Assembly: GCA_010909165.1 (NCBI GenBank) | Contig: MU008167.1 | Span: 992,001 to 1,056,000 of the forward strand | Direction of reading: 5' to 3' | DNA: 64,000 nucleotides | Origin: Anthoceros angustus | Taxonomy: Eukaryota; Plantae; Anthocerotophyta | Part shown: one piece after another, positions 7,239-39,456 of the stretch | How positions within the stretch are numbered: the stretch's first letter is position 1 | Layout: every line of letters begins with the position of its first letter | Made by a program: the position numbers and the translations under genes | The notes under the pieces: model-generated | The model's input: only the letters and a program-made list of their open reading frames with translations | What the model was told of the DNA's origin: nothing | The model's database searches: none

Positions 7239-7446
7239 ATAAAGAAACCACTAGAGCGAATGAATTTGCATTGATAGATCAAGGTATTTATACAAGTGTG
7301 TTCGCGTAACTGCTAAGCAATTGATACTCTACGAATTAACCTACCTAACTGTGGGAACCGAAGCTTAAACATTATTTTCCAGGCATCTATGTGAAACGTG
7401 CGCTAACTCGGATCCGCCAGCGCCTACATTGCGCTATGTCGCAACA
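7239..7446 (-). repeat. 5' LTR of copia-A
   Basis: Begins TGTTGCG (minus strand), ends ...TTCTTTA directly before the PBS. Confidence 0.95.
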
Positions 7447-10594: not shown

Positions 10595-10599
10595 GCCAC

Positions 10600-10900
10600 C
10601 AATCTAGGGGAGTTCACGATCGAGATTCCATGTGAAACAAAGCCAAAAGTGTAGAAGCTTCGCCGGCCCTTTCCCAAGCACATGAAGGAGGTAAAAGAGG
10701 AGGTGTATAGATTGCTGGTGGCAGGCTGCATTGAAGCTGTCACTTACCCAGAGTGGGTATCATCGATCATCATCTCCATGACGAAGAATGGAAAGATCAG
10801 AATTCGTGTGGATTTCCGAGAGTTGCACCGTCCACAACAAAGAACAAGTTCCCCCTTCCTTTTACGAATGAAATTCTAGATGAAATAGCAGGCCGTGAGC
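10600..10900 (+). pseudogene. Ty3/gypsy reverse transcriptase N-terminal fragment
   Basis: KEVKEEVYRLLVAGCIEAVTYPEWVSSII...KNGKIRIRVDFREL, then frameshifted KFPLPFTNEILDEIAG. Confidence 0.8.
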
Positions 10901-12278
10901 TTTAGCGACTCGTAGGTGGACCCAGGCAGTTGTGCCGCAAGCGCGAGTTGGGGCCAGAGAGCTTGAAGTGGTATAAGATTAGGAGGATGATGAGTTGTGT
11001 TGAGTGTTGAGAATGATGTGGAGCTGAATATTGAGTAGAGGAATAGAGAGTAGGACTTAGAAGAAGTTTCCGAGCGCTCTTGGGTCCAAGTCTTGCCCGG
11101 CAGGTATCCCCATGAACCAGGTCACGTTTCGGCGTGCACCGAGCCAAGTGGCGCACCAACTCCACACAAAGAGAAAAAACAAGTCACTAGATGTTTTCTT
11201 TTGAACTTCTTTGACGAGATCGGTACATCATGTTACCCTACCCTCATATTACTGAAACTAATACTTCACCACGGGCATACCGATGAAATTGTTGGAGCAA
11301 ATTCCTATTAGGCCCAATGGCACATAGAGAATCTCGTAGAATTCTCGTTTATAAAGTGGTAGCCGAAAAATACAGTCCGCATCCCGAGAAAGTCCAAGGT
11401 GGAGGGTGGAGGAGGACGTGATCCTGTCGACACCGCCCTCGTATGAATAAATATTAAAATAACACATGCACTACCTTTAAACAACTCTACAAGTCACATA
11501 TAAACAAGTCCACCGCTGCCACATGGTCATGGTTACCGTGAGGCCTTCAGCGGTAACTACGCTGTCACACATAATCCTCTTTCGACGCACGAGCTTTTCT
11601 CTTCTGCTGCATGCTGGAACCAAAAGGGAGAAGATGAGTGCCAGCCTCTGATGTCATAGCGCGCGGGGGCTCGGCTCGGCTCGGCTCTGGGGCTGACGTA
11701 GCGCGCTTGCTTCGGATCTGCAGGTGTGCGCAATTTGGTTCCAGTGATCACATGTGTGCAGTGCAACTAGTGTCTTCCTGTGGTGCGGTTCCGGCTGATT
11801 GAGCCGCACTGCACGCACCGCAGTCTGCGGGATGCTCAGTTTGTTAGGGCGGCGTGTTGCGAAATTTCGATTTTCGTGATTTTCAATGCTTGATTGGACC
11901 CCGGCGGTGCAGGATTGAAGACATCTAGCAGAGGGAAGGGGATCTGGTGTGGCAAGGCATTGCACACGGTTGATGTTGCAGGTGTTTGGTGTTTTGAGAT
12001 AGAATCGGTGGAGTGGAGCTTAATTTCGAAGCAGGATGGCATCTGCGTTTGGAGGAACCTTTTGCGCTTCAGGTGCTACTGAGGCGCCAATTGGAGACCT
12101 GTGGTGCTGGTCTACTAGTGGCCATTGAGGCCCGAGTTTGTAAGACTTCCTCGGGTCAGTGGAAGGTCGAGCTGACCGGTTGTTGAGGGCTTCACGGGGT
12201 GCCTCGCTTGCGGAGAATTAGGTGGCGTGTGTTTGGAGGATTCTGCTCTGGAATTGGTTTTCCGACCACAGAAAAAAA

Positions 12279-14515
12279 ATGCGTAAATCCGCACTATATC
12301 GAAGTGGGCAGGAGGAGATATGGCGACGCCAGATCGGAGACCTTCGACCTGAAGCATTCTCGCGTAAAATTGGAGGTTGCCTGGTACGGTTGAAGGAACA
12401 CTGAATTCCAGGCGGCGTTTTTCTCCGGCTTTTCAGCTGATTTGCTAAAACCTAAGGTTGGCCTTTGGTGATGCAGGACCTTATTCAGCGCCTCGAGCAG
12501 TTCGCTAACCTGGAGTATCATGAAGGATGTGTAAATACCGTGCACTTTAGTCCGAACGGCGACTTGCTAGTGTCAGGATCGGATGATAGGGACATTGTGT
12601 TTTGGGATTGGGCTGCAAGGTCGAAGAGGCTTCACTATGACTCAGGCCATGAAAGCAATGTCTTTCAGGCCAGAATCATGCCATTCTCGGATGATAGACA
12701 TGTCATCAGCTGTGGCGCAGATGGCCAGGTAGTGGTCAAGATTTGTGGTTTTTCTCATTAGGTGCTACAGTACTAGTACCATCTTGCTTACGAGGCAAGT
12801 GTGTTGACGTTCCCATTTGAAGGTTCGACACGCTGAAATTTTGGAGAACGGGAAGATAGCCACCAAGAAACTTGCAAAGCACAGGGAGCGTGCTCACAAG
12901 TTGGCTATAGAGCCTGGGAGTCCTCGTACCTTCTTCAGTTGTGGGGAGGATGGTGTCGTGCGACATGTAAGTTTGGCTGTTCATTTCCCTGCGTAAGTTT
13001 GAGGGGTTTGTAGTGGATCTCTTGTCAGCCACATGATCTTCGTTGATAAGGAACTAGAGTTGCGCAGTCTACTGGAACTTTTGTAGTGATATGTTGTACA
13101 CGTGCAAATATCTGACAGCACCTTGATGCACAGTCTCTAGCTCATGATGCACTGTAATTTCGGATTCTTGAGGTGGCGTGTTGGATGTGATTTCTGTTGC
13201 AACTGTTATATTTACATGACAAGACGGAAGGCTGTGGTTGGTAAAGAGGATGGAAGGTGCATGCAGTTATATAAAGTTGGCCTGCTTGGTTATGAGGAGT
13301 TTGTGTGTGTCCTGAATGTCTCAGCTTCCAGATGAGCAGTGGAATGTCTGATTGATTGGATTGCCGTATCTGACCTTGTTTCTGCTTGCCTTTGCTGAAG
13401 CTCTTTTTGATCTTGCTGTGGGTTTCCAGTATGATCTACGAGAGAGCAAAACTACAAAGCTGTTCACTTGTCAGCCTATTCATTCTTCAAAGCCCAGGAG
13501 GCATCATAGTTCTGTCCGCCTGAATGCAATAGTAATCAATCCACGAAACCCCAACTATTTTTCTGTCGGGGGATCAGATGAGTATGCTAGGGTATACGAC
13601 ATCCGCAGAGTGGATGTGGATGCATCTGGTTCCGAAGACAAACCAGTTGAGGTGTTTGCTCCAGCTCATTTAGTTGGAGCCGGTGCTGGAGCTGTTACCA
13701 TCACATGTGTGGCATACTCTTTGCAAGAGGAGCTCCTGGTCTCTTATAATGATGAGCAAATATACCTGTTTGACAAAGATATGGGCCTGGGACCAAATTC
13801 AAAGCCTTCATCAGAGGAGAAAAGTAGTGAGCCGGAGAAACCTGCTCCCCAAGTGTACAAGGGCCATCGGAACTGCAAAACAGTCAAAGGTGTCAACTTC
13901 TTTGGTCCGAATACAGAGTATGTTATGAGTGGTTCTGACTGTGGGCATATCTACATTTGGAAGAAGAGGGGAGGACAACTGGTGTGGATGATGCGAGGTG
14001 ACAATCGTGTGGTTAACTGCCTGGAACCTCATCCTTATGCTACCATTCTTGCCACGAGTGGGTTTGAGAAACATGTTAAAGTGTGGGCTCCTACTGCTGG
14101 AAAGATTCAGTCACTTCCCGCAGATGCAGAACGGGTGAGCTCTTGTTTCTTTGTGACTGAGTAGATACTGCTTTCTAGAGTCTGTGTGCTGGAAATCTGC
14201 TGCTGTACAACGAAGGCAGTGGTTGATTGCGTGATGGTACTATTTATTGCTTCATTCCCTCTGCAGGTGATGGAGGCAAACAGACGTCGGAGGGAGGACC
14301 GGGGTCACATCTCCCTGACACCAGATGTGATCATGCATGTCTTGCGCCTTCAGCGCCGGCAAGCACAAAGTGACATGGAACAACGGAGTTATTCTCGAAT
14401 GGAATCTGAGGCGGATGAGGATGAGGATGACTATCTGAGCAACTTCTACGAAGACGATGACTCTTCTGATGAAGGTAGTAGCCATGTGCGTCTGCGCGAG
14501 TGTATTATAAGTTGA
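12279..14515 (+). CDS. DCAF8: WD40-repeat protein, DDB1-CUL4-associated factor 8 (WDR42A)-like; exons ~12279-12383, 12477-12728, 12823-12966, 13430-14134, 14267-14515
   Basis: HEGCVNTVHFSPNGDLLVSGSDDRDIVFWDW, GHESNVFQARIMPF, HKLAIEPGSPRTFFSCGEDG, YKGHRNCKTVKGVNFFGP, VVNCLEPHP; GT-AG junctions keep the frame. Confidence 0.9.
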
Positions 14516-15469
14516 GGAACACTGTACGTCTGTAGATAGCTGTCGCACAGCTACTGCCGACTGTAGGCAGATTAGCAGTGTGTAAATATCAGGGCAATGG
14601 TCATGACAACGTGGTGGCGATGGTGTGGCTTGAAACAATCTAAGCCTCAGTTAGTACCGGATGTTGTTTGTTGCAGATGGTAGGGAAATGCTGTTGGATT
14701 GGGAAATCGGAATTGAGGGTCTAATTTGAAAGCGGAGCAAGTAAATGATGCTGCCTTTTATGTTGAGAGAGGCTCGCTTAGAGCCACTGTGAACAACCCA
14801 GAAGGCTGAGCCTGTAGCCTAGTTCGACAAGCCATGTAGATATGGCAAACCAAATCTGTTGGAAAGGCAGGAAGGTGCATGTTTGCCAGCCCCTTTCCGG
14901 TGCTGGGGTGAGGCAACATTGCAGAGGCCACAAGCTTTGACTGTTTCATATTCTGGTACCAGAGGCTTTGTCCATGTAGAGTACTGCTTCTCCTTTAATG
15001 CAGATAAAACATGCGAAGTTATACTCGCTATTACGTGCTGTTGTAGACCACTGTTGCTGAACGTCTTCTCAATTCTTGCACGTCGTTGGCAGAAGTCACG
15101 TTGTAGTTGTTTCCTTGCACAAGTACTGTTGCATGTATGCAAGAAATGAGCGAGGCTAAGCAGGTATCTTGGGGTCCGGTCCTGTCCGTCCTAGTCTCAG
15201 TCACCTAATGCGTAGGGCCTATTCGGGAACTTTCTCAGGAACATTAGTAGTGCACTGCTGCCAGCGGTATTTGCAAGGGGACTGAAAGTGATGCTTCAGG
15301 GAGCATGAAGAGTCAGAATAACAAAGCTGGTGCGTGCATTTGTCTAGAGCCTTGGAAATGCGGAATGGGCCCAGCTGCTGCCCGGACAGATCCTCAACCA
15401 GGGGAGGAGCTTGAAGCCAGAACGCAAATGGCTTCGGACGTACTCTTGAAACAAAAGATCGCTAAAACA

Positions 15470-15543
15470 TCTCCACGGTGACGCAGGGCTGGAACATCTC
15501 CACGGTGACGTAGGGCTAGAACATCTACACAGTGACGCAGGGT
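15470..15543. repeat. Short tandem repeat (~26 bp, AACATCTCCACGGTGACGCAGGGCTG), 3 copies
   Basis: Visible head-to-tail copies. Confidence 0.75.
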
Positions 15544-15745
15544 AGCAAGGTCAAGAAGGCGGTAGGTGGGACGTACGGGTATGTAAGGTACTGGCCTGCC
15601 CTGTTAATATTGGTTTTTAAATCCCGGTTGGATGTAGGCCAGCACTGGCAGTCCGGACACCAGCCCGGCCAGCCACAGCCACTGATTCCTCTTGGTCCGA
15701 GCGCGTGACACTGCTCATCACTCAAGCTCGCACTTGCCAAATACG

Positions 15746-15850
15746 TTTCTTTAATTGGACGACCTTTTCTTTGTTTCTTTAATTGGACGACCTTTTCTTT
15801 GTTTCTTTAATTGGACGACCTTTTCTTTGTTTCTTTAATTGGACGACCTT
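15746..15850. repeat. Tandem repeat, 28-bp unit TTTCTTTAATTGGACGACCTTTTCTTTG, about 3.8 copies
   Basis: Perfect head-to-tail copies. Confidence 0.9.
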
Positions 15851-15892
15851 TAGCAAGCTGGGGTTTAGCCCACAAGTTCCGTGAATGTAGAG

Positions 15893-15972
15893 CAGGTATT
15901 GAGGCTGAGGATGTTTAATATCACTCGGAAGTGAACGCCCAATTGAACGCTCCTACTCAGCCTCAATACCTG
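15893..15972. other. Short inverted repeat / hairpin (17-bp perfect arms)
   Basis: CAGGTATTGAGGCTGAG (15893-15909) is the reverse complement of CTCAGCCTCAATACCTG (15956-15972), with further imperfect pairing inside. Confidence 0.8.
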
Positions 15973-16169
15973 TTTAGGTAAGAGCTTTATATTCTACCTC
16001 TGATGAACTCAAGATAAGATTTGTTTGCTTCTTACATCATCAACTTACGGAAGCTCCAGCTAACATAAAATAATATGCGGAAATAATTTTCTGGTTTCGG
16101 TATAAGAGACCCAATCAGCATCTACAAAACCAATTACGGCGAACTCTTTGCGACTTGTGGAAGTACGGA

Positions 16170-16459
16170 AAATGCCATATGTGAAGGTGCCACTCAGATA
16201 CCTCATGTAGAAATAAGCATTTATTTATATACAACCCTAACTAATGATTGTATTAGGGTAGGGTTATACGAAGCGTTATTATGAAACGCTGTCTTAAGTT
16301 AGAGTTACATATTTTCTTTTAGGTCATACAACCGTCATAACTCTTTGCACCACCTTTTTGTACCACTCACACTTTTCTCAATTCACTCTTTCTTTTGTGC
16401 AATCCTTTGACGACTGCTCTGGGCCTGCTTGTGCCATAATTGTTTATGGTATCAGAGCC
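16170..16459 (+). mobile_element. Probable orphan LTR end followed by tRNA-Met PBS
   Basis: TGGTATCAGAGCC at 16447-16459 preceded by ...TGTTTA; upstream TATA-like and CT-rich sequence. Left boundary is a guess. Confidence 0.4.
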
Positions 16460-17193
16460 ATACAAATGCTTGCACGCATGTAGCGAGACCTATAATTGGG
16501 CGCAATATATAGTAACCATCATCCTGATGGCCACTGCATTCTGTGCCCAATACAGGCCACACCACCTGCAAACAAGCATTCAGATTAACAATTTAATGAA
16601 TTTTCATAGGAATCTAGCTTCTCTAACCCAGCAGGCCTACTCTACATGAAGAGGTGTAAAACAATGTAGACATTAAGTTCACGCTATAAGATGCAAGCGG
16701 TAATAATGGCCCCCCCTGTGATTCGAATCCATCTGCTAGTTTAGCTGCTGATAAACCCTAATTCCATGCAGTTTAGCAGTGGAGAGTGGAACGGGGTGGG
16801 GTGAAGTGTATGAATATGCTCGGCATCAGGGCAAACTGTGAACACACGTGTCTTCATTCAAACATTCACAGATTGAGGCCAGTGTGTGATCAGGTGCGTT
16901 GTGCGCGGTGCTGCCTGCTCCCAGTACAAGCTTCCACAGTGGAGAGCACAACTAGTCACCATCGGATTCCAGCTTCAACGCCAACAAATTACGTGAGGGT
17001 AGCGCTATCTGATCCGATCTTCTTTTCGGCTATTGGCGGCTCAATTTCCAGGTTCGTTGCGCCTTGTTCAATCAACTTTCTCAATTTCACTGTAGCAATG
17101 ACAGACCGGTTTTGAAGGTGCTGTTGCACGAATTGCGTTGGCTGAATTATGCCGCATGAAGTAACCACAGGAGTTGCTTTTGTGGAATTGTAG

Positions 17194-17805
17194 GTGATGG
17201 CTATGGGAAGAAGGAGTAAGAAGGATCAGGGTGACCCGATCCCGGATCCCCCCGAGCCTACACAGAAGGCGAAAAAGACAAGGGCGAACGGAAAAGGAAA
17301 TTTAAAAGCACCCATGGAGAAGAACCTTGTTGAAGGTTTGCAGGGAAGACCTATTTCTGCCTCTGTTGCATGGGCACATGCTAGCCTGCCGGCTACGGCT
17401 GGAACGCTTCCTGTTATGGGAGGACAATCGAAGTCCGAGAGCCTAACATCGGCGAAAGCAAGCATAACAAAATCAGGAGCACATAGAGAGAAGGAGGATA
17501 AGGATGGAAAGAGGGTGGTTCCCATTCCATCATCATACAGTTTCGAGGAGACAGTTTACATCATATGTCTTGGGGCATAGATGGATTCAATCAAGCTATT
17601 GGACAAGGATTGGATGGTTGTTCAAGATCCGGAACCAAAAGACGAGGGTGTTTTTTGGACACCTTTGTATAAGTTGTGGATCATAGGATACAAGGACGCT
17701 CTACCAAATCAAAGAGCCAGGGCTGGATTGCTAGTATGGGCAACGTTAAACATGTCAAATAGGGATAAGGAGGCTTCGTATCATTTATATGGGATGAGAC
17801 TAACA
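17194..17805 (+). pseudogene. N-terminal half of a beta-class DNA N4C/N6A methyltransferase-like gene (split by CACTA)
   Basis: Lys-rich N-terminus, then YIICLGA*MDSIKLLDKD (resembles IICGDCLEVLKKLPD). After a frameshift, GGFVSFIWDETN continues in frame across the CACTA empty site into 29347. Confidence 0.65.
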
Positions 17806-18439
17806 CACTACTACAAAACGGGACGGTTTATGACAAGCAGGAAATGACAGGCGCCTATTCTGCATCACTTCGTCATTAAAGAATGTCGGGGTCGGTGGCA
17901 AATGACATTGTGCATGCGGCTGTCACAGGGTGTTTATGACAGATGTATTCCTCGTGTTTCCTCTGTCATTGGGCCCCATACTAATCTTTGGATTCCATCC
18001 CGGTCAATATCGGTTACGGTGGGGGTTGTTGATTGTGTGTCTGTTGTCTGGAGTTGGCCTTCCCGTTCGCGGTCTGTCGACTCAGCGGGGTTAGTGTGCG
18101 ACCATTGTCGAATAAGCAGTAACCATGTTTCGATCCTGCGGGCGTGCCTTTGGTGGGAGAGGATGGCTGACACCATTCCCAGCGTCCGTTGTTGCCTCCA
18201 ACGGCGGAGGACCCAACGTCTCCCGGTAGGCGTACCTTAGTTGTGAGCGGGACTCTCACCACCTTCTCTGTGAACTCCTCTTTTACTCGCAAAGGCCTTT
18301 GCACCCAACTCCGCCATAGCGGGCATCGGGTGAGGTGCTATGGATCCTCCTTACACCACCGTCAAATACCTCGGGTCATACTGCATTGCCACAGTTGCGA
18401 AGGAACCACACACCCCATCCAGCCGCTGGCCGTCACATC

Positions 18440-21300
18440 CGTTCATGGGCGCGCCTGCTCGCCGAGGTGAGGCGGTATGTCCCGGTGGCCAATCGCCGCT
18501 CTTGGCGTAAACCGTCGAGGCGGGGCAATATTGTTTGCTTGTCTCAGCGCCGTCGAAATCGAGTAGATCGAGGTGTCGGGGCCTATGTGCATCCACGGTA
18601 GGCGGGCGGGGTTGGGGCTCGTGTCGGGCCACGCCTCAGCCCCTCCGGTTGGGGCTTGTCGTCTGCGGCCGAGTTTGTTGATGAAGTACCATTGCCGACA
18701 TGGCGGTAGTCTGATTCGGCGGAGCGCTTGCGAGTTGATGCAAGACTTCATAGCGGTGCTCGGGAGGGACAATCCAATTTGGAGGAGGAGGCTGCCAAAC
18801 CCTTATGGTCGGTCTCGGGCGGAGGAATCCATGCATAGTCGTGTCCTGGCATTCCTTAACATCCAAGACCGTATAAGATATAGATACTGCCATGTCGCAA
18901 TCTTGACCTCCTTTCTTCGTCGGTGTTGCCGAAGACCAACAGTATGCCGAAGGCAAGGTCGGATGTCCGTAAGATGATGCTACGTCGGGCGATTAGCGTC
19001 TGAATTGATGCGTGTTGGGGCTGTTCCTTGTTTTGGGGCACGAGGGCATTAGAGACCTCTTGCCACGTTTGCGGCGAGCCCAGATATCGCGAGGGTGCCA
19101 CTGGGCAACCTATTTCGCGGAAGACAATGTTTTATTTCCCGCTGGCGGATCGCCTCCGCCGAATGTATGCGTGCTCTTCAACAGCACGTGAACTGATATG
19201 GTGGAAGGACCATAGGAGCACCGATGGTCAAGTGCGGATAATGGCCGACACACCCGCCTGGCAGGCCTTGGATAGTGTAAGTGCCTTCGGTCTGGAAGAC
19301 CGAAATCTTCGCCTCGGTATCTCTGACGGCTTCAATCCAAGCGGCCATCGTTCTTCCTCGTACTCCATCTGGCCTGTTCTCATTTTCATCCACAATTTTC
19401 CTCCTTGGCTCACGACAAAGAAGCAGCGGATTCTTATGCCTTTAATCATCCCGGGGCCGAAACAGGTCAAGAATATGGATGTGTATCTCCAACCTTTGTT
19501 GGAGGCTGGCGACAATAGGTGGGTGTCCCATGTGATCATTCCAAAGGCGTGTCGGCCGGGTCGCTTTTTCATCACGAGGGCTGGGTGCTTCACGCGACAT
19601 GTGACTACCACGGACTCGGGCGCGCTTGCAAGTGAGAGGCTATCGTTGTTGTGTGGTGCGGGGGCTTCGAAGCTAGATGGTCCCGGCTTTGGAGAAAGTC
19701 ATTTGCGATGGGCACCGAGATGGTGCCCCGTCACCATCGAAGCGCATGATGACCACCGTGAGTTTTTCGACAATGCAAGTGATATGCGGCGCCCCTTCCG
19801 AACCGTGCGGGACATCATTGTGAGATGGATGCTTGGGAAAATGCGACCGGGTGGCGGGCGGCTGCATGTCATGGGGTGTCAGCGCGCTGCTTCGTTAAAA
19901 TGCTGCCCTACTTGCCTATTCCAGTTGTGGTGAAAGACGTGATGCACGGAAGTTAACAAGCTGCCGAGCTTTTGGAACATATGGAGTGGCAAATGGGACA
20001 CCCACAATGCTAGGGTTGACCTTATGAATGTGGCCTCCAAGCCGTGGCTGTGGCCTGTTCTGGATGACGCGGGTGAGGCCCACCTCCCCCCTGCGTCATA
20101 CACATTGAGCAAAGATGACTTACAGCCGTGAAAGCGGAGCTATGCAGGATCAAACCACCAACGGCATTTGGGTCCAACCTTGCAACCAGCTTTGGTGGGG
20201 CAACAGTCACAGGGCTGAAGAGTCACGACTGGCACTTGCTCCTCCAATTTTATTTTCCTATTGCACTACGCCACCGTTTGAGAGGCCCAGAGTACAAAGC
20301 CTTCATACAGCTGAGCTCCATCTACCGATGGATTTGTCAGAAGGCAATCAAGCCCACAGAAATCCCTGCGATGCGGGCTCAGGTTGTGGATACAATGGTG
20401 GCCTTGGAGCGGTATTACCCTTCCGTGTTTTGGAATCCGATGCAGCACCTCTTTATCCACCGCTAGATGAAGTTGCCACGCACGGCACGGTGCATGTTCG
20501 ATGGATGTACCCTATCGAGCGGCATATGAATGTCTTGAAGCAATCAATCCGCCAGAAAGCCCGGCCCGAAGGAAGTATGGCCACTGGGTACTTGGCAATG
20601 GAGAGCATGTTTTATGCAGCGGACTACCTGGCGGCAAGGAATCCGGCTCAGACTCATTTGTTCCAGCGTACATCTATAGACCGGGATGCAGAGCGTCCCA
20701 TCAGGAAAGCGCAACCCAGAACCCTAACAGCCATGGAGCAAAAGCGTATGCACTGGCATTTCCTGCTCCATTCGGAAACTTTGGATGGGATTCGAATGGA
20801 GTTTGATGTTGAGGGACAGCACCGGGCCACTTTCCTCGAGTGGGAAGCCGTGTGAATCGGCGTTGGCAATCCACAGAGCAGTACAACGATATTCGGGCCA
20901 TGGTGAGCAGGCCGTAAGCGGGTCAGCGATTCTGAGGGGTTGGAGACAATGGGGTACCATTACACTGTAGCCGGTGACACCGTCGCTCCACAGGGGCATT
21001 GGGTTTTGGGACCTTTGACATGGAAGACCAACCTGTTCAGTTTTTCGGCCAGGTTGAACAGATTCTGGATGTGACTTTCGAGGGGGCAGACTTTTGTGCC
21101 TTTGTCCTCCAAATCAAGTGGTTTTTGTGTGACGTATCTTCAAACCCAAAGTCTATGGAAGAAGACATGAGCGGTTTCATGGCTGTGGACACAAGGAAGG
21201 TGTACCGATATCGAAGTGACCACAAAACCGGGCCATTCACGTTTGCCCGACACGTCCACCAGGCGTTAGCACACCGGATGTGGGAGAAGGCCGGGGAGGG
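18440..21300 (+). pseudogene. CACTA TnpD-like transposase (Transposase_21, DUF4218- and DUF4216-like regions), frameshifted
   Basis: CHVCGEPRY, YFPLADRLRRMY, NLRLGISDGFNP, SIWPV, IIPGPKQVKNMDVYLQPL, GLKSHDWH, RWMYPIERHMNVLK, RPEGSMATGY, FFGQVEQIL. Confidence 0.9.
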
Positions 21301-21468
21301 TAGTTCATTTGCACACCGGTGCCTTCTCGGTGGGATTTGCTATTGGAAAAAGACATGTAAACCCACGATCACTGGGATGTACAGAGCTTCATTGAAATGT
21401 AAAACCACCAAGTGCCTCCATGTCACGGGCACACGTGCGGTCGTGCCATCTGATGGCCCTGAACAAAG

Positions 21469-24400
21469 CTAACCAAAGAGAAAATCCGACTTCGAAAGGC
21501 CGCGACGGACTTGCACCTCCAACGGACTATTGAGGTCTGTCGGCGTAAACACAAAGGCAAAGGTTGCCCCAACAACCAAAGCATGCCCTTTCCTACTGCC
21601 GATGCAGTGACAACACTTCACAATCAAATCACATGCTTCCATGACATGGAAGATCCCTTCGTCATTCAGACGGAAATCGGCATATGCAATGAAATGGTGG
21701 CAATGGTCGATACGAAGGGATCTTGTGTTGAAAGCCCACACACCACCGTCATCAACCTCCTTCTTCGAATGGCGAGCTTCCCACCAACCTTGGATCTGCA
21801 GACACCAATCCTACCACACCCTTTTGCATCACAACGTCATGCGCTCCTCATCCCATCTTGGCCCGACAGTGCGCTCAAGCATTTGCCATCCGTGGTCGCT
21901 CCACTTCACCCACCGCAACTCGCTCAGGATGTCTTCCTTCAAACTGTTTTCGGCGGTTAAACGTCTTGCCGGCTTCGGCTCGTCCAAGAAGCAAGGTGCG
22001 AGCTCTATAACTCGGATGTCATATCGGTTTGCGGCAAGGCGGCAATGAAACAGAACACAGGTTGATGGAGTGCACACCTCCACGAAGGTGGCAATCGTTT
22101 TGAGGTATTCCCGCTTCTTCATCTCATCCAGGATGTCGACGACAAAGTCAGCAATCTCCGTCGCGCGTTCCATGATGCCCTTGCCCAACCTGGGATCACA
22201 TCCCACATACCAAGGCTTGGGGATCTTCCACTTGTCCTTCGTACGCACATTCCAGGGGCCAGCATCATTGGTTGATAACGGGATCAACCAATTCTTCTTC
22301 TCCGAGGTGAATAGGCCAGACGGCCCTACAAGCTGGAATGCCCACCGTTCGCGCCCAGAGGGGCCGAATTGCAGTGGTGGGACGTCCCCCAGTCGGTACG
22401 CATGTGCAACCGCGTAGTCCCAGCCAGAAAGAGCAATTGCATGATCCCACTGCCAAATTGGCCCGGTGCGCTCAAGCATTTGCCATCCGTGGTCGCTCCA
22501 CTTCACCCACCGCAACTCGCTCGGATGTCTTCCTTCAAAGCTGTTTTCGGTTAAGCGTCTTGCCGGCCGGCTCGTCCAAGAAGCAAGGTGCAGCTCTATA
22601 ACTCGGATGTCATATCGGTTTGCGCAAGGCGGCAATGAAAGCGAACACAGGTTGATGGAGTGCACACTTCCACGAAGGTGGCAATCGTTTGAGGTATTCC
22701 GCTTCTTCATCTCATCCAGATGTCGACGACAAAGTCGCAATCTCGTGCGCGTTCCATGATGCCCTTGCCCCAACACGGGATCACATCCCACATACCAAGG
22801 CTTGGGATCTTCCACTTGTCCTTCGTACGCACATTCGGGGCCAGCATCATTGGTTGATAACGGGATCAACCAATTCTTCTTCTCGAGGTGAATAGGCGAC
22901 GGCCCTGGCTGGAATGCCCCGTTCGCCCGGAGGGGCAGTGCGATGGTGGGACGTCCCCGGTCGATGCGCATGTGCAACGTAGTCCCGGAGAGCAATTGCA
23001 TGATCCACCGCCAAATTGGCTGGGCGGGCGTTGATCATTTGCGCCGGGCGCGGTCATATCCCACAATGCGGGTCCTTCAAGCTTCGTGCCGCGACTCCCC
23101 AAACCACCGTCGCTAGATGGGCTCTCGAAGGCGTTCCAAGTGTTGCATCGGTGAGTCACAAGGCTCACTCTCGGAATGGCGGTAGCCCAGTCATGCAATC
23201 GCGTGCCCATCTTGGCTTTCCATCTCGAACACCGCGCAAGGGTGGCAGCAAGTGAATGTCGGGCGGCGGCTTTGGTGATATGCAGCGCGAGGCGATGGCT
23301 TGGAGTGAAGGTCGAACCTCCACGGTGTCCGTTCCGCTGTTCCTATAGGCGTGAGCGGACTAGGTGGTACGAGCAACACACGGCACATAGCGCACGGCTA
23401 GCAAAATAGTCACCTACGGGAAAAGCCCGAAATTGGCTATTTCCCTCCCCTCATCTGGACTAAGCCAAGCCGATGAACCCTACCCGGTCACGCATACATG
23501 GATATACGGCCTAGTCAAACTTCCACTGCAGTCCACCGTGCCACCTCAACTCCAAAGCGAGGACATGGTGTGTATTGCGTGAATGCAGATGCCAGGAATG
23601 CATGCACTGTCATATCGGACATGGCAGCTGGCACGTGTGAGACTCACGCCTGATCAGGCATCGCGCACGCTGCGTTAATGACATCTTGGATGACATCCGG
23701 CGGGATTCGGATAGTGATGGGTCGTCCGTGTGTGAAGCGCCCGCTTTATATCTCGGAGGTGTAGACTCATGGCGTTGCCCATTGGGGTGGTCGGGGATGG
23801 ATTCGCAAGCATCAATCCCTAGATTCGCCTTGGAGTGGCACGATGAGCAAGAGAGGACTCCTCAGCGCCCGACCTCGCATTCCGCTACCACCACCGAGCT
23901 GTTTGGGAATGAGCAGATAAGTCCATGTCTTTTGGATCTTCGCAATTGGCCATACATAAGGTAGGAGGTGAGGCAGGAAGGCGATGGCCTTGATGGTGCA
24001 CACCCAGAGCGATTCCATGTTCGTTTCGCCGTTTTGGGTGCGATTGTATGTTTTGAACATGTACACACATGAGGTTCTCCACATTGCTCCGTTGCCGTGT
24101 GTGAAGCGCCCGCTTTATATCTCGGAGGTGTAGACTCATGACGTTGCCCATTGGGGTGGTCGGGGATGGATTAAGCATCAATCCCTAGATTCGCCTTGGA
24201 GTGGCACGATGAGCAAGAGAGGACTCCTCCAGCGCCGACCTCGCATTCCGCTACCACCACTGAGCCTGTTTCGGGACGAAGCGAATGGGAGTCCATGTCT
24301 TTTGGATCTTCGCAATTGGCCATACATAAGGTAGGAGGTGAGGAACCGGGCGATGGCCTTGATGGTGCACACCCAGAGAACGATTCCATGTTCTGGTTTC

Positions 24401-24600
24401 GCCGTTTTGGGTGCGGATTGTATGTTTTTGAACATGTACACACATGAGGTTCTCCTCAGTATCCGTTGCGAGTGTGAACCCATGGGCGAAACCCCTAGCA
24501 CAGGCAGCAAGATCAAGGTGAGCAAAGGCTGTCCAAGACTACTCGGTTCATTGTCATCACGCTCATAAGTCTCAACGGTACATGCGGCTAGCCATTTCGC
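21469..24600 (-). pseudogene. Unidentified passenger coding region inside the CACTA, antisense to the transposase, partly duplicated
   Basis: One frame from ~22465 to 21469 (~330 codons) with two in-frame stops (21829 TGA, 21811 TAG). More coding-like, duplicated pieces at 22467-23010 and 23750-24530. No domain recognised. Confidence 0.5.
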
Positions 24601-25749
24601 TCCTTGTGGTAGGGTTGGAGGAGGCCAGGTTGTCCCACCTAGCCAGCGGTTACCATTCCTGCATGCCCCAGTATGACTACCTTCCCAAGGTAGCAGCAGC
24701 TTTCACAGTGCTTTGGTGACATGGGTGAAGAGCTCCCGAGGAACCGCGGTAGTGAGTCGTGAGCCCTGGCCGATCTCATCCAGTGCCATGGATGTCGATC
24801 CAGGAATTGCATTGGTCCTCGGCATGGATGCGCCGCAATCACCAGCTTCAAACGGCTGGCGTGGACGTCCTGTAATTCCCACAATTGCTTCCCTTGCCAG
24901 ACTTGAGGTATCGTCGGTGTAGCAAGCACCAACTTTCACCTTCTTTGCTCCTCTTCTCCTCTCCGCTCACCTTGTACATCACATATTCTTTGCCCATTAA
25001 TGTGGCACCTATCTAGAAATTCTGCCCTTCAACAGAATATGTTTGGTACTCTTATTAACAGTACCTTAATCACGAGCCACCGATTCGTGGTTGGAATCTT
25101 GGGTGATCCTCTCCTTGCTAGTATTATGGAGGATTGTGGAACCCAAAGCTCTACCCTTGTATATTATTAGCATTCTATTCATTAAGGATATGGCTATATA
25201 TGATTAGGCAAAGCTGCGGGCACGGGAGCGTGAGAGCGGCGGCGGCGGCGGCGGCGGCAGCGGCGGACGTCTTACGCAGCAAAGGCGGGCACGGAATGCG
25301 TGGGCGCGGCCTTCTGACTGGAAGGTCAGAGGGCGGGAAGCGGCGATGGAAGAGCGGCGGTTGTCAGCCGAGCCGCGGCGGGCGTGGAGACCGGGCTGGG
25401 GATGGGTTGGGAGGTCGTCCCGCGGGCCTCAAACACATAGCACGTTGGGGCCGTGCAAGTCCCGGAGCATCTGGGCGTGGAGGTCCGTACACTGCGGAAG
25501 AGGCGTTGGTGCGCCGTCGTGGCCGCCACACCGTTAGAACTACCAATGCCGTGCTCGGAGGAGGCTCCGATCTGACCGGCTCGGTGGTGAAGTGTGGCGC
25601 TCCCGATCCTTCCATCCGAACTTTGCCCACCGTGGCTGTCGTGGACATGACCGCGGGAGCCAGGCGGGCGATGGCGAGCACGGCCATCACCGGCGGGGCG
25701 GGCGGGAGACTCCGGCGTTAGCATGACATCGAATAAGACACAAGGCATG

Positions 25750-28566
25750 GCAGTGCAATGATCGGCACCTTGATCCGAGCTCTTCGTTCAAATTTGAGTG
25801 CATTTTGAGATCACCAGCGCCTTGGCGGTCCGCAATTTGCTAACGGCGAGCAAACCCAAGGCGCGTGCTACCAGACCCGCACCCACCGCTGCGGGTTGTG
25901 AAATCTAGGGAGGAGCATCCGTGCATCTGAGGGGCAAGAGTGGAACAACTCCTAACCGATCTCGTCGCTTGATTGGGGAAGACATGACGGCGGGGCGGCA
26001 AAGCAGTGACGGGCTTGCAACATGGGCGAGATGGGGAAGGCGAGGTAGATGTCACTGCTCGAGAATGAGGGCGACATGCTCCCCGGACATGCAAGAAGTT
26101 TCGAGGAGAAGAGGCGGCGACACACAAGCTCACAGTCGCGGCAGGATGGGCAGGACTCGGCCGAAGGTCCCGTGGGGAACACTTGTGTCAGCGTCGTGCC
26201 GAGCCAGGTTGTTGGACCTTCTTGCCGGAATTGCCAACAGAGGTCATCGGTTTGATCGGGACTCATGGGCATCACAAGATCTATATGATTGGCCGCCCGA
26301 TTGTGTGCGAGGCGGACAAAGGCGGACTTACTTGTCATGTGACGGAGGGGTCATCGGGCGGACAAATTGTCCATGGAGAAGAGGATCCGAGGAATTGGTT
26401 CTTTGCCAAGACTTGTGTTTTTGAAGTGCTGGACAAAGCATGATGCAGCGCTTCGGTCTGAGCTTATGGACGTAGTGGCGGAGGAGTACCCAGCTGTGAC
26501 CAATCGAGAAGTCATCCGAACAAAGTTCTCGAATTGTACCAGGGCGCGGTGCTACAACCACCTGAAAAGAGTGAAGAAAGGGGCCAGAATTCTGCGAACA
26601 TCAGGGAAGAGGGCACCTGTGGCCCGGTTGCGGCCCGACTCTGTGACGCCGGAGGTGTGGTGGGAGGCAATCGAGTGGGGTGTCCAACAGTACGAGTTGG
26701 GCAATGGAAATTGGCCAAGATGTCCACAAATAATGTGGAAGCAAGATTGAGAAGCATGGGACAGCTGGACAAACCCATTTAGGCGGAGGAGCATCCGTGC
26801 ATCTACGAGGCAAGAGTGGAACAACTCCTAACCAGTCACGCTTGATTGGGGAAGACATGACGGCGGGGCGGCAAAGCACGGCAGCGGGCTTGCAACATGG
26901 GCGAGATGGGGAAGACGAGGTAGATGTCACTGCTCGAGAATGAGGACGACATGCTCCCCGGACATGCAAGAAGTTTCGAGGAGGAAAGAGGCGACACACA
27001 AGCTCACAGTGTCGGCAGGATGGGCAGGACTCACCAAGGTCCCGTGGGGAACACTTGTGTCCGCGTCGCCGAGCCGAGTTGTTGGACCTTCTTGCACGGA
27101 ATTGCCAGAGGTCATCAGGCTTGATCAGACTCATGGGCATCACAAGATCTCGCAATTGGCCGCCCGATTGTGTGCGGAGGCGGACAAAGGCGGACTTACT
27201 TGTCATGTGGGAGGGGTCATCAGGCGGACAAATTGTCCATGGAGAAGAGGATCCGAGGAATTGGTTCGTAAGACTTGTGTTTTGAAGTGCTGGACAAAGC
27301 ATGATGCAGGCCTTGATGCAGGCTTGGACGTGGTGGCGGAGGTACCCCAATGTGACCAATCGAGAAGTCATCCGAACAAAGTTCTCGAATTGTACTAGGG
27401 CGCGGTGCTACAACCACCTGAAAAGAGTGAAGAAAGGGGCCGATTGCGAACATCGTGGAAGAGGGCACCGTGGCCCATTCTGTTGACTGTGGCCGGAGGT
27501 GTGGTGGGAGGCAATCGAGTGGGGTGTCCAACACGAGTTGGGCAATGGAAATTGGCCAAGATGTCCACAAATGACGGCCGTGGAAGCAAGATTGAGAAGC
27601 ATGGGACAGCTGGACAAACCCATTTGGGCGGAGCAATGGACTTGATGAAAGGTCACGAGGAGGTATCGGTGGCGGTAGAATGTTGCGGAGATCCAATGGG
27701 CAGCCAAACATGGCATGGACGGCATACTGTGTTTTTCAGCAGCAATGAAGACGGTATGTGACCTCCTTCCCTCCTCCCCCTCTACGGATCAAGGGAACCG
27801 GCTTCTGGTCAGGACATTGCATCGTCATGTTCTTGTTGCCACACTCGGCTTCTCTGTATGCGATCTGACCACTGGAAAAAATGGCTAGCAGGGCAAGCTG
27901 TCGAGGAAAGACATCAGAAATGCGTCACACGAGGTAGGTGCATCGCGTAAACCTAGTGGAGGGCTCCTTTGGTTGTGCTAATGCAATGGGGAGGGTCACG
28001 TGGCCACTCCTAAACCAGGGTAGTTGCATATGGCCGACCGGCACGCTTGTGACGCTCTGTATTTCCTTTGTCCAGGAGAAGGGGAAGCTAACCAGGTCGG
28101 AAATGGAGATGAAGAACATACAGGTAAGTAAATACCCCTGTTCCCGGTAAGTGATTGTGGCTGGCCATGCCCGATAGAACTTGGTGCATACGACAGTCTA
28201 ACTGAGTGCTCTGTGGTGTGTTCGCAGATGCAAACACACCAAAGAGGGGAGGAGGGAAGCGCCGTGTGCAAAGGACCATGTGCAATGCAACCCCAGTGCA
28301 AACGCAAAATCTTGCGGAGGTGGACATTGTGCAGAAACGCAGTTCGCCAAAGAACTCCCACCCGAGAGTCAGCAGCGCCCTCGGATCGAGATGCAGAGGG
28401 GCTTGTAGATGGGTGGGATGGGCCCGAACCCCCTGCGAAACGGAACGTGGGCTGCCCAACGAAGAAACGAAAGGACGCACCCGCACGCAAAGGAGCCACG
28501 AAGAAGAAGAAAGTGCAGGCGTCCTCCGAGGGTGTTTCAGCGTGTAGGTCTAGCATAGATCACTGA
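25750..28566 (+). pseudogene. Second CACTA ORF (TnpA-like position), duplicated and frameshifted
   Basis: Coding-like KCWTKHDAALRSELMDVVAEEYPAVTNREVIRTKFSNCTRARCYNHLKRVKK...VWWEAIEWG in 2-3 copies; Lys-rich tail at ~28430-28520. Assignment is by position only. Confidence 0.45.
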
Positions 28567-29343
28567 TCCGGCTTTTTTTGACTGGCGAACGTTCAAGTGG
28601 GGTGGCTGGATGTGCATGTGGCGGCATCCGATAGGACTACACGGCTAGGGACGACTGTTGGCTCAAAAGATGGACGGATGTGTCGATAGCCTTTTGTTTT
28701 GCCTAAACAACAGAAATAATGGGTAATAATCTGCGGTTTCCCAAAGTGATCATGACACTTTTAGTATATATAAATAGATATTCATTAAACGCATAACGCG
28801 GTTGCCAGCATGGAAATTCCGGCAGGCGACGCCTGCATGCGCTTGACCACGGAGGCCTCACGCTGAATGTGCTTGCTCGATGGGGCCATCAACCGTACGA
28901 CGAACGCATAATATGGAAAGGACAAACGTGCTGCACTTCCGGACACCAATGGGTATCCACGTGGCAAACCCACCTCCCCGTGCGGATAGGATGCCCATGC
29001 CACGGACGCGTCCCCACATTCCTGCGTGCGACGAAGACGACGGCGGCATTGACGAACCCTACCCGCAGGATGTTGCGAACACTGCGAACACTGCGGTTAG
29101 AACTGGAACAGCCGCGACCTGCGGCAAGTGAGAGAGTGGTTGGCAGGGACGGGAATCCCGCCAACAGGAATCGCGAACGGGAAAATTCACTGTCGTGAGA
29201 CACCGTCATTCGGAAATCGAGCACGATATTCTTATGACGAACAAACCACAAATTTCCGGCCGAGTGAGCTTGTCATAAACGAGACACAAATGTCACATCC
29301 TTGTCTTTAATTTCGTCATATTCTGCCTCCTTTTGTAGTAGTG

Positions 29344-30080
29344 AACATGAACAACGACAGAGGCGGATTTGAGACTGTGGAGTACGTTACAGTGGGATGG
29401 GGTATTAAAGGAGGATGTGCGAAGGAAAGGGCTGCCATGATGCCAAATGCGATGCACGGAACTTTCAATTGAAGGTCCATTATTGGACACCCTATTGTCG
29501 TGAAGAAACATGTTTACCTCTCTCATGCAAGTTGGTGGTGTGCCCATACCAGCGACCAATGGGACTCATGATGAAACTGGTAAGGACATTCTTCAAGGAA
29601 GGGGACTGGGTTATTGATGCATGTGCAGGCAGCGGGACTATGACACTAGCTCCGTTATTGTGTGGCCAGAACTGTATTGCAATTGAGGGGGATTTGAGGT
29701 GCGCAGGTTATATTGAACAACGCATACATGGTGTTGATCGTGATGTCCTGCCAGATGCAGAGGAAGAGTTGACTTTTAAGTCGCATCGGAGGAGGCCATC
29801 TCAGTTCTGGGCAAAGGAGGTTTGTATTAGTGAAAAGGACTGCTTAAAAGCCCAAGTTGTTGCATTGAGTGCAAAGAGGTTGAAGATGACAACCGGCGAA
29901 CTTATGGATGATGGCCAGCAGACCTTGGATGCTATTTGACAAGTGACCCTGATAGATGCCGACCCCCAGAATGATATCAATGAAGACGAGCAGGCGTTAG
30001 GGGAGAATGACAGCTTTGACGCGCAGGAGATGGAATGCATGCGCAATTTGGCAATTGTTGTAGATTCAACCTCGATGTAA
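29344..30080 (+). pseudogene. C-terminal half of the beta-class DNA amino-methyltransferase-like gene (SAM-binding motifs)
   Basis: CPYQRPMGLMMKLVRTFFKEGDWVIDACAGSGTMTLAPLLCGQNCIAIEGDLRCAGYIEQRI (from 29541) matches the HPTQKP..L...GDxVLDPFxGSGTT...GRxxIGIE pattern. An acidic tail continues past TGA 29937-29939 to TAA 30080. Confidence 0.85.
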
Positions 30081-30497: not shown

Positions 30498-30736
30498 ATG
30501 GTGTTAAGAGCGTATCTCCACTATGCAAATCTCCATAATGATGCGAATTTGACTATTGCAATCATACAAGGTGTCATACACACCTACGAGGGGCTTCTCC
30601 CTTTAGTATTATATTTGCAACTGGACACCACATGCAGGGAAAATAAGAATCAGCTGCTATTTATGTACCTCAACATGCTAGTGGAACTACAGATATTTAA
30701 GAAGGTTAAGGTGGGGTTTCTGCTCGTGGGACATAC
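30498..30736 (+). pseudogene. DUF7869-like (RNase H-fold, DDE-type transposase-related) fragment
   Basis: HNDANLTIAII...LPLVLYLQLDTTCRENKNQLLFMYLNMLVELQIFKKVKVGFLLVGHT resembles the LYLQLDNCxRENKN...FLxVGHTHEDID family; cut exactly after GHT by an LTR. Confidence 0.7.
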
Positions 30737-31446
30737 TGTGGCGCTACTTTTGCTGACGGCTAGCCGGGCGTGCACCAGTCCTGTGTCGTTGCAATATGGG
30801 GTCCGTTCCCAAGGGAATGACTTGTTTCGTTTGTGCACATTTTCCTACTCGGCACCCTTCGTCGTCGAGGGACAATGGCTTACCCGCGGTCACCCACCCC
30901 TACGCGTCAACCCACACGGACTGCGGTTAATCTACCCTTCACCTATGTCACCCTGCTTACTCACCGTACACGCCCAGGATGGCCAAACGTTTAAGGACCC
31001 GTTCTCGTCCGAAATCTTCCTCTCTTCACTTACCACCCTCACTTCGTTTATCCTACCACTCTCGTTCGCACCCAAGAATCGAAGTTCACGGTCGGGTGTA
31101 TTTAGGTTGCAGACCTCCGTCGCCCACTACAGTGCGTTGCTCTACGCCCTTCTTGGAGTCCGGCTAATCGCGCCCACTCGATTAGCGGCCATGGGACCTT
31201 GCTCCGGAGGAGCAGGGGTCCTGAGTCCTCCACACCTGCACTCACCACCACGTTTAGGGTGCGTCACCAGGACCTGGATCAGTCTCTCCGGAGTAGTCTA
31301 CCCGCTCAGTGACTCGGGACTCGCATTAGCAATAGACACACAAGGGCCTGCAAATGTAACACGACATCAACCCCAAAAGAAAGATCCCTTCACTCGAATG
31401 GCAATCTCCCTCTTATACTACGTATTGAGGGAGTGTCTTTATTACA
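30737..31446 (-). repeat. LTR (~710 bp) of a truncated minus-strand LTR retroelement
   Basis: TG at 30737, CA at 31445-31446; on the minus strand a purine run (AGGGG) precedes TGTAATAAAGAC. No partner LTR found. Confidence 0.6.
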
Positions 31447-32767
31447 CCCCTAATTCAAGCTAATGGCCAGCTCACTATGCCCAAGCAAGTGGATCTCCAC
31501 TTCCCATATTTTCCTACCTACGTCTACGGCGGTGGGGCTGTGGTTGACTACGATTCCCTCCTGGCGCTGGCAGTCCAATCCCCAGCTCTGGCACCTGTGG
31601 AGCACCCAATCCGATGATTCGTGGCCCCCAGAGTCCCGCGAAGGCTCTTCCCCTATCCCTAGTGCAGCCGGCTGCGCCCTGAGGTGGTGTGTGGCTATTA
31701 CCGCTAAATCCTCCTCCTCAGTCACGGCGTACAGGGACCCCACCCTTGGTCCGTCCGAGCCCATTCTTCTGGCACAGTGGTGACTCTCAACCACCCTTAC
31801 CCCCACTCCCAGGGTCCAAACTACTGGGCTCATTCCCCCCTCTTGAGTCCGGACCTCGGGGTCCGTCCTCGCCTCCTGAGTCCAGACCTTGGGGTCCGTC
31901 CTCGCCTCCTAATCCGGACCTCGGGGTCCGTCCTCTCCTCCTGAGTCCGGGATGCTGGACTCGGGTCCTCCACCGGTCTCTGGACGTCAAGTTCGGAGTC
32001 CCTCCCAAGGGTCCGGCTTCCAAGCCCGGACCCACTCTCCCATCGTCCCCCTGCCTCATCTCCTCCAGCGCTATGTCCCTACCCGTTCCTCCTGCGTCCC
32101 TTCCTGCGTCCTCCTCCGGAGCTCTCTCTTCCTCTCTCTACTCCGGAGCTATCTCTCCCCCTTTCGACGTTGGGTGCGATGGACCTTTCTCTGGTCTTGT
32201 TGTCTCCGCTTCCGCCCTCCTCCTCGGCGTTCCTCCTCAGGGCCTCCCGCTCACTCCTAATCCGCGAGCAGGCTCCCAGATTCCCACAATGGTGCGCTCT
32301 CCCCTAGCTAGGCCTTCATCTCTCCAGGCCCCCTTCGACTCCTCTGGCGTGTTAGAGTATGAAACCTAACATAGTTTATAGCTAGTTACATAGTTATTAA
32401 TCCAAGAGACACGTTTCATTTTTGTACTTAAAGAGACATCTCTCTCATTTTATTAATTCAATGCTTTTATTTACAAAGCACGCTTCCGCGTTACTTAGCA
32501 TGGTATCAGAGCACTAGGCTCTTCGATTCATGTTTACATTGATCTAGGCTGCTTTATTAGATTAGATGCTATGCATAAGATGAGATAGAGGTCTCAACGT
32601 AATTCTGTGTGTATTTCTAGATACGCACAGCACTATGGTGAATTATCTATCACATCTCCTGCATAACATCGTCAGTCTAGAATTGGTGGGACTACTCTAA
32701 GAAGAAACACTTCAATGTTTGTCTCACTAAAAGCAGTGAGGATAGTATGTCGGTCTAAAGCAGTATC

Positions 32768-33322
32768 GTGTTCCTTTTGTGGCGAGATGATCCGAAATGC
32801 TCGCTACGCTGGAATCGACGCCTTGACACCTCACCCAGGAGTGTCACTAGACGGAACCCTCAGGTGCCTCCTTCCTCAATTGCAGCTAGGCGGTTGAATC
32901 GGGACGAGCATCGGGATCCGCGCCTCTGCTCCTACCACGCAGCACAGCGCATTAATTCACGGCAAGGATTGGCATTACGACCACAGAGAGAATACCGATC
33001 AGATGCAGATGAGGATCTGATTGTGGATGATTCTTACTCGGCACTTGAAGATCGTCTTCGCGATACACAGGTGTTGCTGTACAGGATGCGATCTGACCTT
33101 GCTCACCAGCTGGAATCGGCAATCTCTCAGATCACTGCCCTTACGGAGAATTTGTGCCTGCAATCAGAGGCCATACGAGTGCAATCAGAAACAACTTACA
33201 GAATTGCAACTTTCCTCAGGATCCCAGATCAAGGACATTCAGCAGTTCTCCCAAATGTTGCGCTCTATGTGCCAGCGCTGACGCCTCCCTCTCGTGAGCG
33301 TTCGGCTTCCGAGGCGGTGTGA
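32768..33322 (+). CDS. Extra ORF between PBS and gag in copia-C (184 aa, coiled-coil-like)
   Basis: Open frame containing LEDRLRDTQVLLYRMRSDLAHQLESAISQITALTENL; start codon uncertain. Confidence 0.45.
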   Translation: MFLLWRDDPKCSLRWNRRLDTSPRSVTRRNPQVPPSSIAARRLNRDEHRDPRLCSYHAAQRINSRQGLALRPQREYRSDADEDLIVDDSYSALEDRLRDTQVLLYRMRSDLAHQLESAISQITALTENLCLQSEAIRVQSETTYRIATFLRIPDQGHSAVLPNVALYVPALTPPSRERSASEAV

Positions 33323-33575
33323 TCAGGTCACGGCGCGGCCTGCAATTGATCGGCGGCAAGGCAAGATTGCTGCCTCCAACTCAATGGCGAGCACGGCGGT
33401 CAGCCAGTGCATCGAGCAGACCTCGGTGTGCCTCTCGGGTGTGATTGGCTCCACCACCACGAACGTATGTCTATTAGCAACGTTTCAAGGTTAGTTGCAT
33501 TGTTTCGTATCTAGCCCTACGTCTTGCTGGTTCGAAACGCCACTTACCAGTGTTCATGTCGTTTCGGCCTTCTTT

Positions 33576-39207: not shown

Positions 39208-39456
39208 AAGCAAAAACAGACTGCAACTCTGTGCAGGCCTAGGACTAGCTTCCTCTCAAGTTTTGTGCACACCACACAAGAAGGGTTGCACCTTAGTGGC
39301 ACTCACCGCATCTCCACTAGCGGACTTCAGTTGTCACGAGGAGCCACCTTTGGCTCATATCCCTCCTGTGCAGCACAGAGTAAGGTCGTCAGCATGGCTG
39401 TTTAGAGGATGAAGCATACAGATGAATTCAATCGTAAACAGTACATGGATAGTAAA

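Follow-up and report, generated by a model that had tools for sequence, protein, structure and literature searches.

We analysed a 64,000-nt stretch of the Anthoceros angustus assembly GCA_010909165.1 (contig MU008167.1, positions 992,001–1,056,000 of the forward strand), hereafter the window, in which positions are counted from the first letter. Comparison of its sequence with known families supports the presence of a dead beta-class DNA amino-methyltransferase (PF01555, N6_N4_Mtase), a relic interrupted by a nested CACTA element and followed by a fragment of a DUF7869-type transposase. The features are listed below, where profile positions refer to a family profile of 264 positions that we built on 15 eukaryotic relatives.

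17194–17768, + strand: left-flank open reading frames (ORFs), one lysine-rich (17194–17577) and one beginning MDSIKLL (17581–17805), without detectable homology to the methyltransferase family.
17769–17804, + strand: left part of the methyltransferase relic, twelve codons reading GGFVSFIWDETN, profile positions about 105–117.
17806–29343, + strand: CACTA/EnSpm DNA transposon nested in the relic, 11,538 bp long, with terminal inverted repeats (TIRs), Transposase_21, DUF4218 and AACA at its flanks.
29347–29514, + strand: part of the methyltransferase relic that reads MNNDRGGFETVEYVTVGW...IVVKKHV in frame mod 1 and covers profile positions of about 118–174, with a TGA at 29470–29472.
29532–29939, + strand: methyltransferase relic matched by PF01555 and the family profile, with PYQRP (29544–29558), motif I VIDACAGSGT (29610–29639) and CIAIEGD...YIEQRI, ending in a TGA (29937–29939).
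29940–30080, + strand: acidic tail at the C terminus, continuing in frame beyond the TGA and closed by a TAA stop (30078–30080).
30507–30737, + strand: DUF7869-type transposase fragment of about 76 residues, cut at both ends (PF25273, E 1.1e-22).
54336–54613, + strand: second, shorter methyltransferase fragment of about 230 bp, motif I region only (family profile E 5.7e-8).

The ORF at 29415–29939 (+) carries, in order, CPYQRP, KEGDWVIDACAGSGT, CIAIEGD and YIEQRI. A first-pass annotation, made from the letters of the window, had described a block that binds S-adenosylmethionine (SAM) here, and this block is real. PF01555 matches its motif I (FxGxG) region over model positions 163–212 of 221 with 29.1 bits, above the gathering threshold of 26.7 (E 1.2e-6), and the family profile, run against all 2861 six-frame pieces of the window, matches 29532–29936 (+) with 99.2 bits and an E-value of 2.9e-29. 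Relatives were sought with phmmer among 1.84 billion cluster representatives. The relic block 29532–29939 retrieved 272 proteins at E ≤ 1e-3, the top match being 45% identical (E 2e-14) and the best relatives 44–45% identical across about 80 residues. PF01555 is present in all ten of the phmmer matches that were scanned with Pfam. A word-indexed profile search gained few extra relatives.

To the right of the CACTA element the true path of the gene runs in frame mod 1 until about 29515–29531 and then in frame mod 0, changing just before LVVCPYQRP and not at CEGKG, where the switch had first been placed. Joined into one path with an X at each break, the relic scores 115.8 bits over profile positions 105–256 and is continuous across the CACTA junction. 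This path matches the family blocks W-x-K-x-N, E..T(I/V)G, VxKK, PYQKP and GDWV.D..(S/A)GSGT. The blocks from W-x-K-x-N onward are kept and precede motif I in the sequence expected. The recognizable part carries two in-frame stops (TGA at 29470–29472 and at 29937–29939) and one frameshift (about 29515–29531). The copy is dead, as had been said, and cannot be functional. The earlier view that N4-cytosine (N4C) and N6-adenine (N6A) specificity cannot be told apart is upheld, as no call is possible for the relic copy. The acidic tail was also correctly recognized: it occupies 29940–30077 and ends ...IVVDS..., and the relatives, that of Ginkgo among them, likewise have acidic tails in which (I/V)V..DS occurs, a likeness judged by eye.

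The CACTA element is bounded by 29-nt TIRs (17806–17834 and 29315–29343, 79% complementary) that start with CACTACTACAAAA, and it encodes Transposase_21 (tnp2; 19028–19930, E 4e-28) and DUF4218 (20115–20852, E 9e-14). At its left border GAGACTAACA is followed directly by CACTAC, and at its right border GTAGTG is followed by AACATGAAC. AACA is present at both flanks (17802–17805 and 29344–29347, with AAC or ACA as the repeat within AACA), which indicates a 3-bp target-site duplication and one ambiguous base. Removal of the element together with one AACA yields ...FIWDETNMNNDRGGFETVEYVTVGW..., a single frame in which FIWDETN is joined to MNNDRGG, and a site without CACTA is expected to read ...GAGACTAACATGAACAAC.... 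The proposal that deletion of 17806–29343 restores the frame therefore holds in that the flanks do rejoin in frame, but the 4-nt duplication must go as well, since plain deletion leaves the join one base off.

In the rejoined DNA, hmmsearch finds profile positions 106–174 in one frame directly upstream of positions 177–255 in the next. In the twelve codons of the left flank the W-x-K-x-N block is kept as W-x-x-x-N, where E replaces K. A path that includes these codons reaches 116.8 bits, compared with 111.0 bits for one that omits them. This gain of 5.8 bits was equalled by 7 of 3000 random 12-mers drawn from the six-frame translation of the window itself (p about 0.002). The intact TIRs, the flanking duplication, the in-frame rejoining and the randomization together show that the two flanks were once contiguous and that CACTA landed inside the methyltransferase frame.

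The gene is thus interrupted by an 11.5-kb CACTA element, as its TIRs, Transposase_21 and DUF4218 bear out, but it is not split in two in the sense first proposed: only 12 recognizable codons lie left of the element, and the catalytic half is absent or unrecognizable. The left-flank ORFs score at most −3.3 bits against the N-terminal profile of the family, even when the search space is set to a single sequence, and phmmer against 190 related proteins gave no significant match (E ≥ 0.65). Neither YIICLGA, stop, MDSIKLLDKD nor the lysine-rich N-terminal extension has support as part of the methyltransferase, to which they had been assigned. QDPEP (about 17623) and WTPLY (17656), the strings put forward as motif IV, have no score against the family profile, and a motif IV of the form (D/N/S)PP(Y/F/W) was not found there. 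Nor was the motif IV region found anywhere in the 64 kb when an N-terminal sub-profile was run against all six-frame pieces. Searches of 14000–17805 by tblastn with 151 relatives returned nothing significant, the other four pieces named by the first-pass annotation had no family match in Pfam even at E 10, and the ESM Atlas returned nothing for the lysine-rich ORF. A ParB domain upstream of the relic likewise gave no signal with Pfam, tblastn of the 151 relatives or phmmer against the 190 proteins.

We conclude that the front half most probably disappeared by deletion or replacement upstream of about 17769 and not by mutation alone, because the back half is still 40–45% identical to distant relatives and an equally old front half ought to be visible. 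One motif-I-like string, SWGIDGFNQAIGQGLDGCSRSGT (17565–17657, +, frame mod 0), was found at a window-wide E-value of 0.36; it has no DNA similarity to the true motif I and is probably a chance resemblance.

The transposase fragment starts about 430 bp past the methyltransferase tail, on the same strand. Its last residues are ...LLVGHT, directly after which the conserved HEDIDQ would come. Two loci in other genomes show how the two genes can be arranged. The Riccia sorocarpa locus (L003) has a methyltransferase at 10001–11538 (+) followed by a DUF7869-type transposase at 13957–15636 (+), and the window is collinear with it: 29547–29741 corresponds to 11305–11499, and 30507–30737 to 14900–15114, with 59% identity between the transposase fragment and 14998–15114. 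The interval between methyltransferase and transposase is about 2.6 kb shorter in the window than in Riccia. The second locus is an 8.9-kb metagenome contig (L004), with a DUF7869 transposase at 378–3534 (−) and a 789-residue methyltransferase relative at 6015–8384 (+). Here a single pair of 28-nt TIRs (20–47 and 8844–8871, 96% complementary) encloses both genes. In a tblastn search with its transposase (a 580-residue exon), residues 89–164 match 30507–30737 of the window with 43% identity (E 9e-12). With the L004 and Riccia transposases as queries, 30507–30737 is the only match within the window, and the rest of the transposase was not found there. The sequence that follows the abrupt end of the fragment (30738–32345) is proline/serine-rich and GC-rich, with 32–33-nt tandem repeats at 31825–31948, and is probably an insertion that removed the remainder of the transposase.

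Other copies are present both in the window and elsewhere in the genome. The second methyltransferase fragment is 76% identical in nucleotides to 29560–29787. ORFs downstream of it were considered as a transposase and rejected, as they belong to a YGGT host gene. About 300 bp downstream of this fragment lies a foldback of about 400 bp (54897–55298) with nested arms that are 84–98% complementary, a hairpin resembling a miniature inverted-repeat transposable element. A DNA sequencing run of the same organism, which includes the neighbouring WD40 gene, contains contigs that are 85–99% similar to portions of the methyltransferase and of the transposase, none of them at 99% or above. One of these contigs continues beyond the break at 30737 with CATGATCAAATTGACCAA, which reads HDQIDQ, so other and less broken copies exist in the genome. 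No contig from two RNA runs of the organism covers the stretch, which, given the small size of these runs, does not prove silence. A search of sequencing runs with a 2.1-kb stretch listed no run.

The eukaryotic relatives form a family in which the block order is fixed. The 15 aligned members extend over about 260 residues, with GD...L...Y(T/S)L..D-x-P-(Y/H/R)-G (motif IV) at the front, followed by W(R/T).V.FHS and W-x-K-x-N, and then E..T(I/V)G, V.KK, PYQKP, GDWV.D..(S/A)GSGT (motif I) and RN..(A/G)VE at the back. The beta order, motif IV before motif I, is found in 15 of 15. Named members are Gb_37443 of Ginkgo biloba, at least four proteins of Chara braunii, KAL3685543 of Riccia sorocarpa, several of Adiantum nelumboides and one of Holothuria leucospilota. 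The last of these, KAJ8049666 (L006), comes from a sea cucumber, has a gene model of 7.4 kb and hints at movement of the family between distant eukaryotes.

The relatives fall into two length classes, a short one of about 420 residues and a long one of 590–790. The long forms share an N-terminal pattern, LGGGH..EAR...C.VY.GLT..EA..GH.HN, that is ParB-like in look, and Pfam did not call PF02195 in them. The solved structures nearest the family profile are N6-adenine enzymes (the DpnA-type M1.HpyAVI, 5hek, E 6e-13; M.MboIIA, 1e-11; CcrM, 2e-11). The rotifer enzyme N4CMT is a weaker match than these, at E 2e-8 and in its C-terminal part only. The link to N4CMT and the Marchantia enzyme MpDN4MT1 is weak, the relatives carrying D-x-P-Y/H/R-G and not TSPPY.

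Clusters of palindromes of about 25 bp occur in the Riccia locus (5506–5534, 6738–6881, 7974–8337, 10145–10395 and 13525–13549; for example GACGTCCATGA..TCATGGACGTC) and in the metagenome contig (3614–3642 and 5716–5941). They adjoin or separate the methyltransferase and transposase genes at both loci and are putative binding sites of the cargo protein. Palindrome arrays were not found next to the relic in the window.

We consider the locus to be, with a probability of roughly 0.8, a decayed copy of a DUF7869-type TIR DNA transposon that carried a beta-class DNA amino-methyltransferase of bacterial or phage type as cargo. By analogy with published algal elements, the intact enzyme would have bound the DNA of its own element and methylated it, as N6-methyladenine (6mA) or N4-methylcytosine (4mC). 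The copy has lost its catalytic front half, by deletion or replacement upstream of 17769, and CACTA has inserted at the codon for N of W-D-E-T-N. On this reading, deletion of about 2.6 kb brought the methyltransferase and the transposase core closer together, the transposase was cut between GHT and HEDIDQ, and two stops and one frameshift accumulated. Homology, CACTA insertion, former contiguity of both flanks, linkage with a transposase and presence in several copies are demonstrated, while the order of these events and self-marking by intact copies are conjectural.

Several observations weigh against this reading. TIRs or a target-site duplication of the carrier were not found around the relic in the window, which leaves the boundaries of the element undefined. 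The transposase fragment comprises 76 residues only and could in principle come from a separate, adjacent dead copy. A DUF7869 gene was not found within 10 kb of the examined Chara and Holothuria relatives, where one quarter to one third of the sequence of the Chara loci is N. The N terminus of the long forms aligns weakly with the N termini of bacterial ParB-methyltransferases (hhalign E 0.046), and the methylation activity of family members is a predicted function.

These observations bear on two rival histories. The locus could be the pseudogene of a domesticated host 4mC/6mA methyltransferase, acquired in one horizontal transfer, unrelated to transposons and merely lying in a transposon-rich region. 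Such a history would fit the annotated members in Ginkgo, Adiantum, Riccia and Chara, the two Chara loci and one Holothuria locus that have no DUF7869 gene nearby, and the existence of a functional host 4mC writer in Marchantia. We regard it as unlikely. The order and strand of methyltransferase and DUF7869 gene agree with those in Riccia, the metagenome contig has both genes within one TIR pair, two fragments lie within 64 kb and diverged copies are present in the DNA run. Moreover, the family has a scattered distribution that extends to an echinoderm, as a mobile element would, and its motif IV is D-x-P-Y-G as against the TSPPY of MpDN4MT1. The first-pass annotation had postulated a horizontally acquired, plant-nuclear family. 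The relatives do form a family that is present in the plant nuclear genomes of Chara, Riccia, Adiantum and Ginkgo, but the DUF7869 linkage, the TIR pair of the metagenome contig and the other copies speak against a hidden gene of the host acquired in a private transfer.

Alternatively, the relic and the DUF7869 fragment could be debris of two independent elements that came to lie side by side by accident, with the methyltransferase carried by an element of CACTA/Plavaka type or some other kind. Both pieces are short and truncated, their spacing is about 2.6 kb off that in Riccia, no carrier TIRs are visible, and the methylase cargo of red algae rides on Plavaka/CACTA-type elements. This coincidence is very unlikely all the same, as the order and strand recur in Riccia and the pairing recurs in the metagenome element, and the TIRs of the local CACTA element do not enclose the relic. 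A chance match, or contamination of the assembly with bacterial DNA, to which the lack of signal from the N-terminal half might point, is refuted by E-values of 1e-6 to 1e-29, by the plant-type CACTA element that interrupts the relic, by the Copia element and plant genes that flank it and by best relatives that are eukaryotic.

The remainder of the window holds host genes and further repeats. A host DCAF8-like WD40 exon (13352–14161) is 65% identical to that of Taxus and 63% identical to those of Adiantum and Selaginella, and the YGGT-family host gene (56188–56833) is split over two frames. A young Copia long terminal repeat (LTR) retrotransposon occupies 32350–40433, with LTRs of about 151 bp that are 99% identical (32346–32503 and 40279–40436). 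Its primer site at 32501, TGGTATCAGAGC, is of the tRNA-Met type, and domains for gag, protease, integrase and RVT_2 are present. One stretch of the element, 34576–35287, recurs at 35715–36397 as part of an internal duplication that measures about 1.1 kb. A further Copia-like pol fragment (4490–5764, −) was seen through its similarity to a Copia element in the Riccia locus. Tandem arrays of 27–28-nt units lie upstream of the left flank (15461–15542 and 15745–15851) and one of 26-nt units lies at 1328–1561; these arrays may represent the subterminal repeats of an element.

The relic itself matters only as a marker, showing that methyltransferase-bearing transposons, previously reported from brown, red and green algae, have colonized the genomes of land plants as well and left many copies in them. 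The interest lies in the family, with its streptophyte-wide occurrence, odd motif IV and palindrome arrays, and not in this copy. An intact D-x-P-Y-G loop, a SAM pocket and adjoining palindrome arrays suggest that some members could be active writers that mark their own element. That a methyltransferase lineage borne by DUF7869 transposons extends across the streptophytes, with some such intact members writing 6mA or 4mC on their own DNA in land plants, is doubtful, and we put it forward tentatively. Should a plant lineage express intact copies, 6mA/4mC signals in plants might originate from them, and they might serve as a reservoir for the recruitment of host enzymes. The literature that we searched, the coverage of which is incomplete, holds no description of this methyltransferase family in land plants.

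A close parallel is the Sola1 family of Ectocarpus (Sola1-1_Ec32, 21.5 kb), the second gene of which combines a ParB-like domain with an N4C/N6A DNA methyltransferase, and for which the authors propose that the accessory protein binds and marks the DNA of its own element (Genome Biol 2025, PMC12477816). The likeness, which we draw from the description of that element, is a prokaryote-type DNA amino-methyltransferase as the second gene of a TIR DNA transposon. The Ectocarpus gene encodes 1104 residues with a ParB domain on the strand opposite to the transposase, whereas the relic shares its strand with the transposase fragment, lacks a ParB region and the catalytic half, and sits in a land-plant host. 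In the red alga Bostrychia, the Plavaka accessory genes PAG2 (N6A methylase and SET) and PAG3 (ParB and 2-oxoglutarate oxygenase) adjoin inverted-repeat arrays (bioRxiv 10.1101/2025.02.11.637652). That cargo resembles ours in joining DNA-modifying enzymes with ParB-type binding, and similar palindrome arrays lie by the methyltransferase genes of the Riccia locus and the metagenome contig. It differs in its carrier, Plavaka/CACTA-like as against DUF7869-type, and in domain make-up, and no array is seen beside the relic.

Among prokaryotic enzymes, the bacterial and phage beta-class N6-adenine methyltransferases M1.HpyAVI (5hek), M.MboIIA (1g60) and CcrM (6pbd) belong to the same Pfam family and match the profile at E-values of 6e-13 to 2e-11. 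The nearest prokaryote-like matches of the profile are phage-type ParB-methyltransferase fusions (PF02195 and PF01555) of about 390 residues. Where the bacterial enzymes have DPPY and HPTQKP, members of the eukaryotic family carry D-(I/F/L/V/A)-P-(Y/H/R)-G and PYQKP, respectively, and their acidic tails are long. MpDN4MT1a/b of Marchantia and N4CMT of bdelloid rotifers are likewise beta-class enzymes of PF01555 type and prokaryotic origin in eukaryotic nuclei. Their motif IV is TSPPY, the N4C signature, whereas that of the family described here starts with D; and they are host genes of demonstrated function, whereas the relic is the debris of a transposon.

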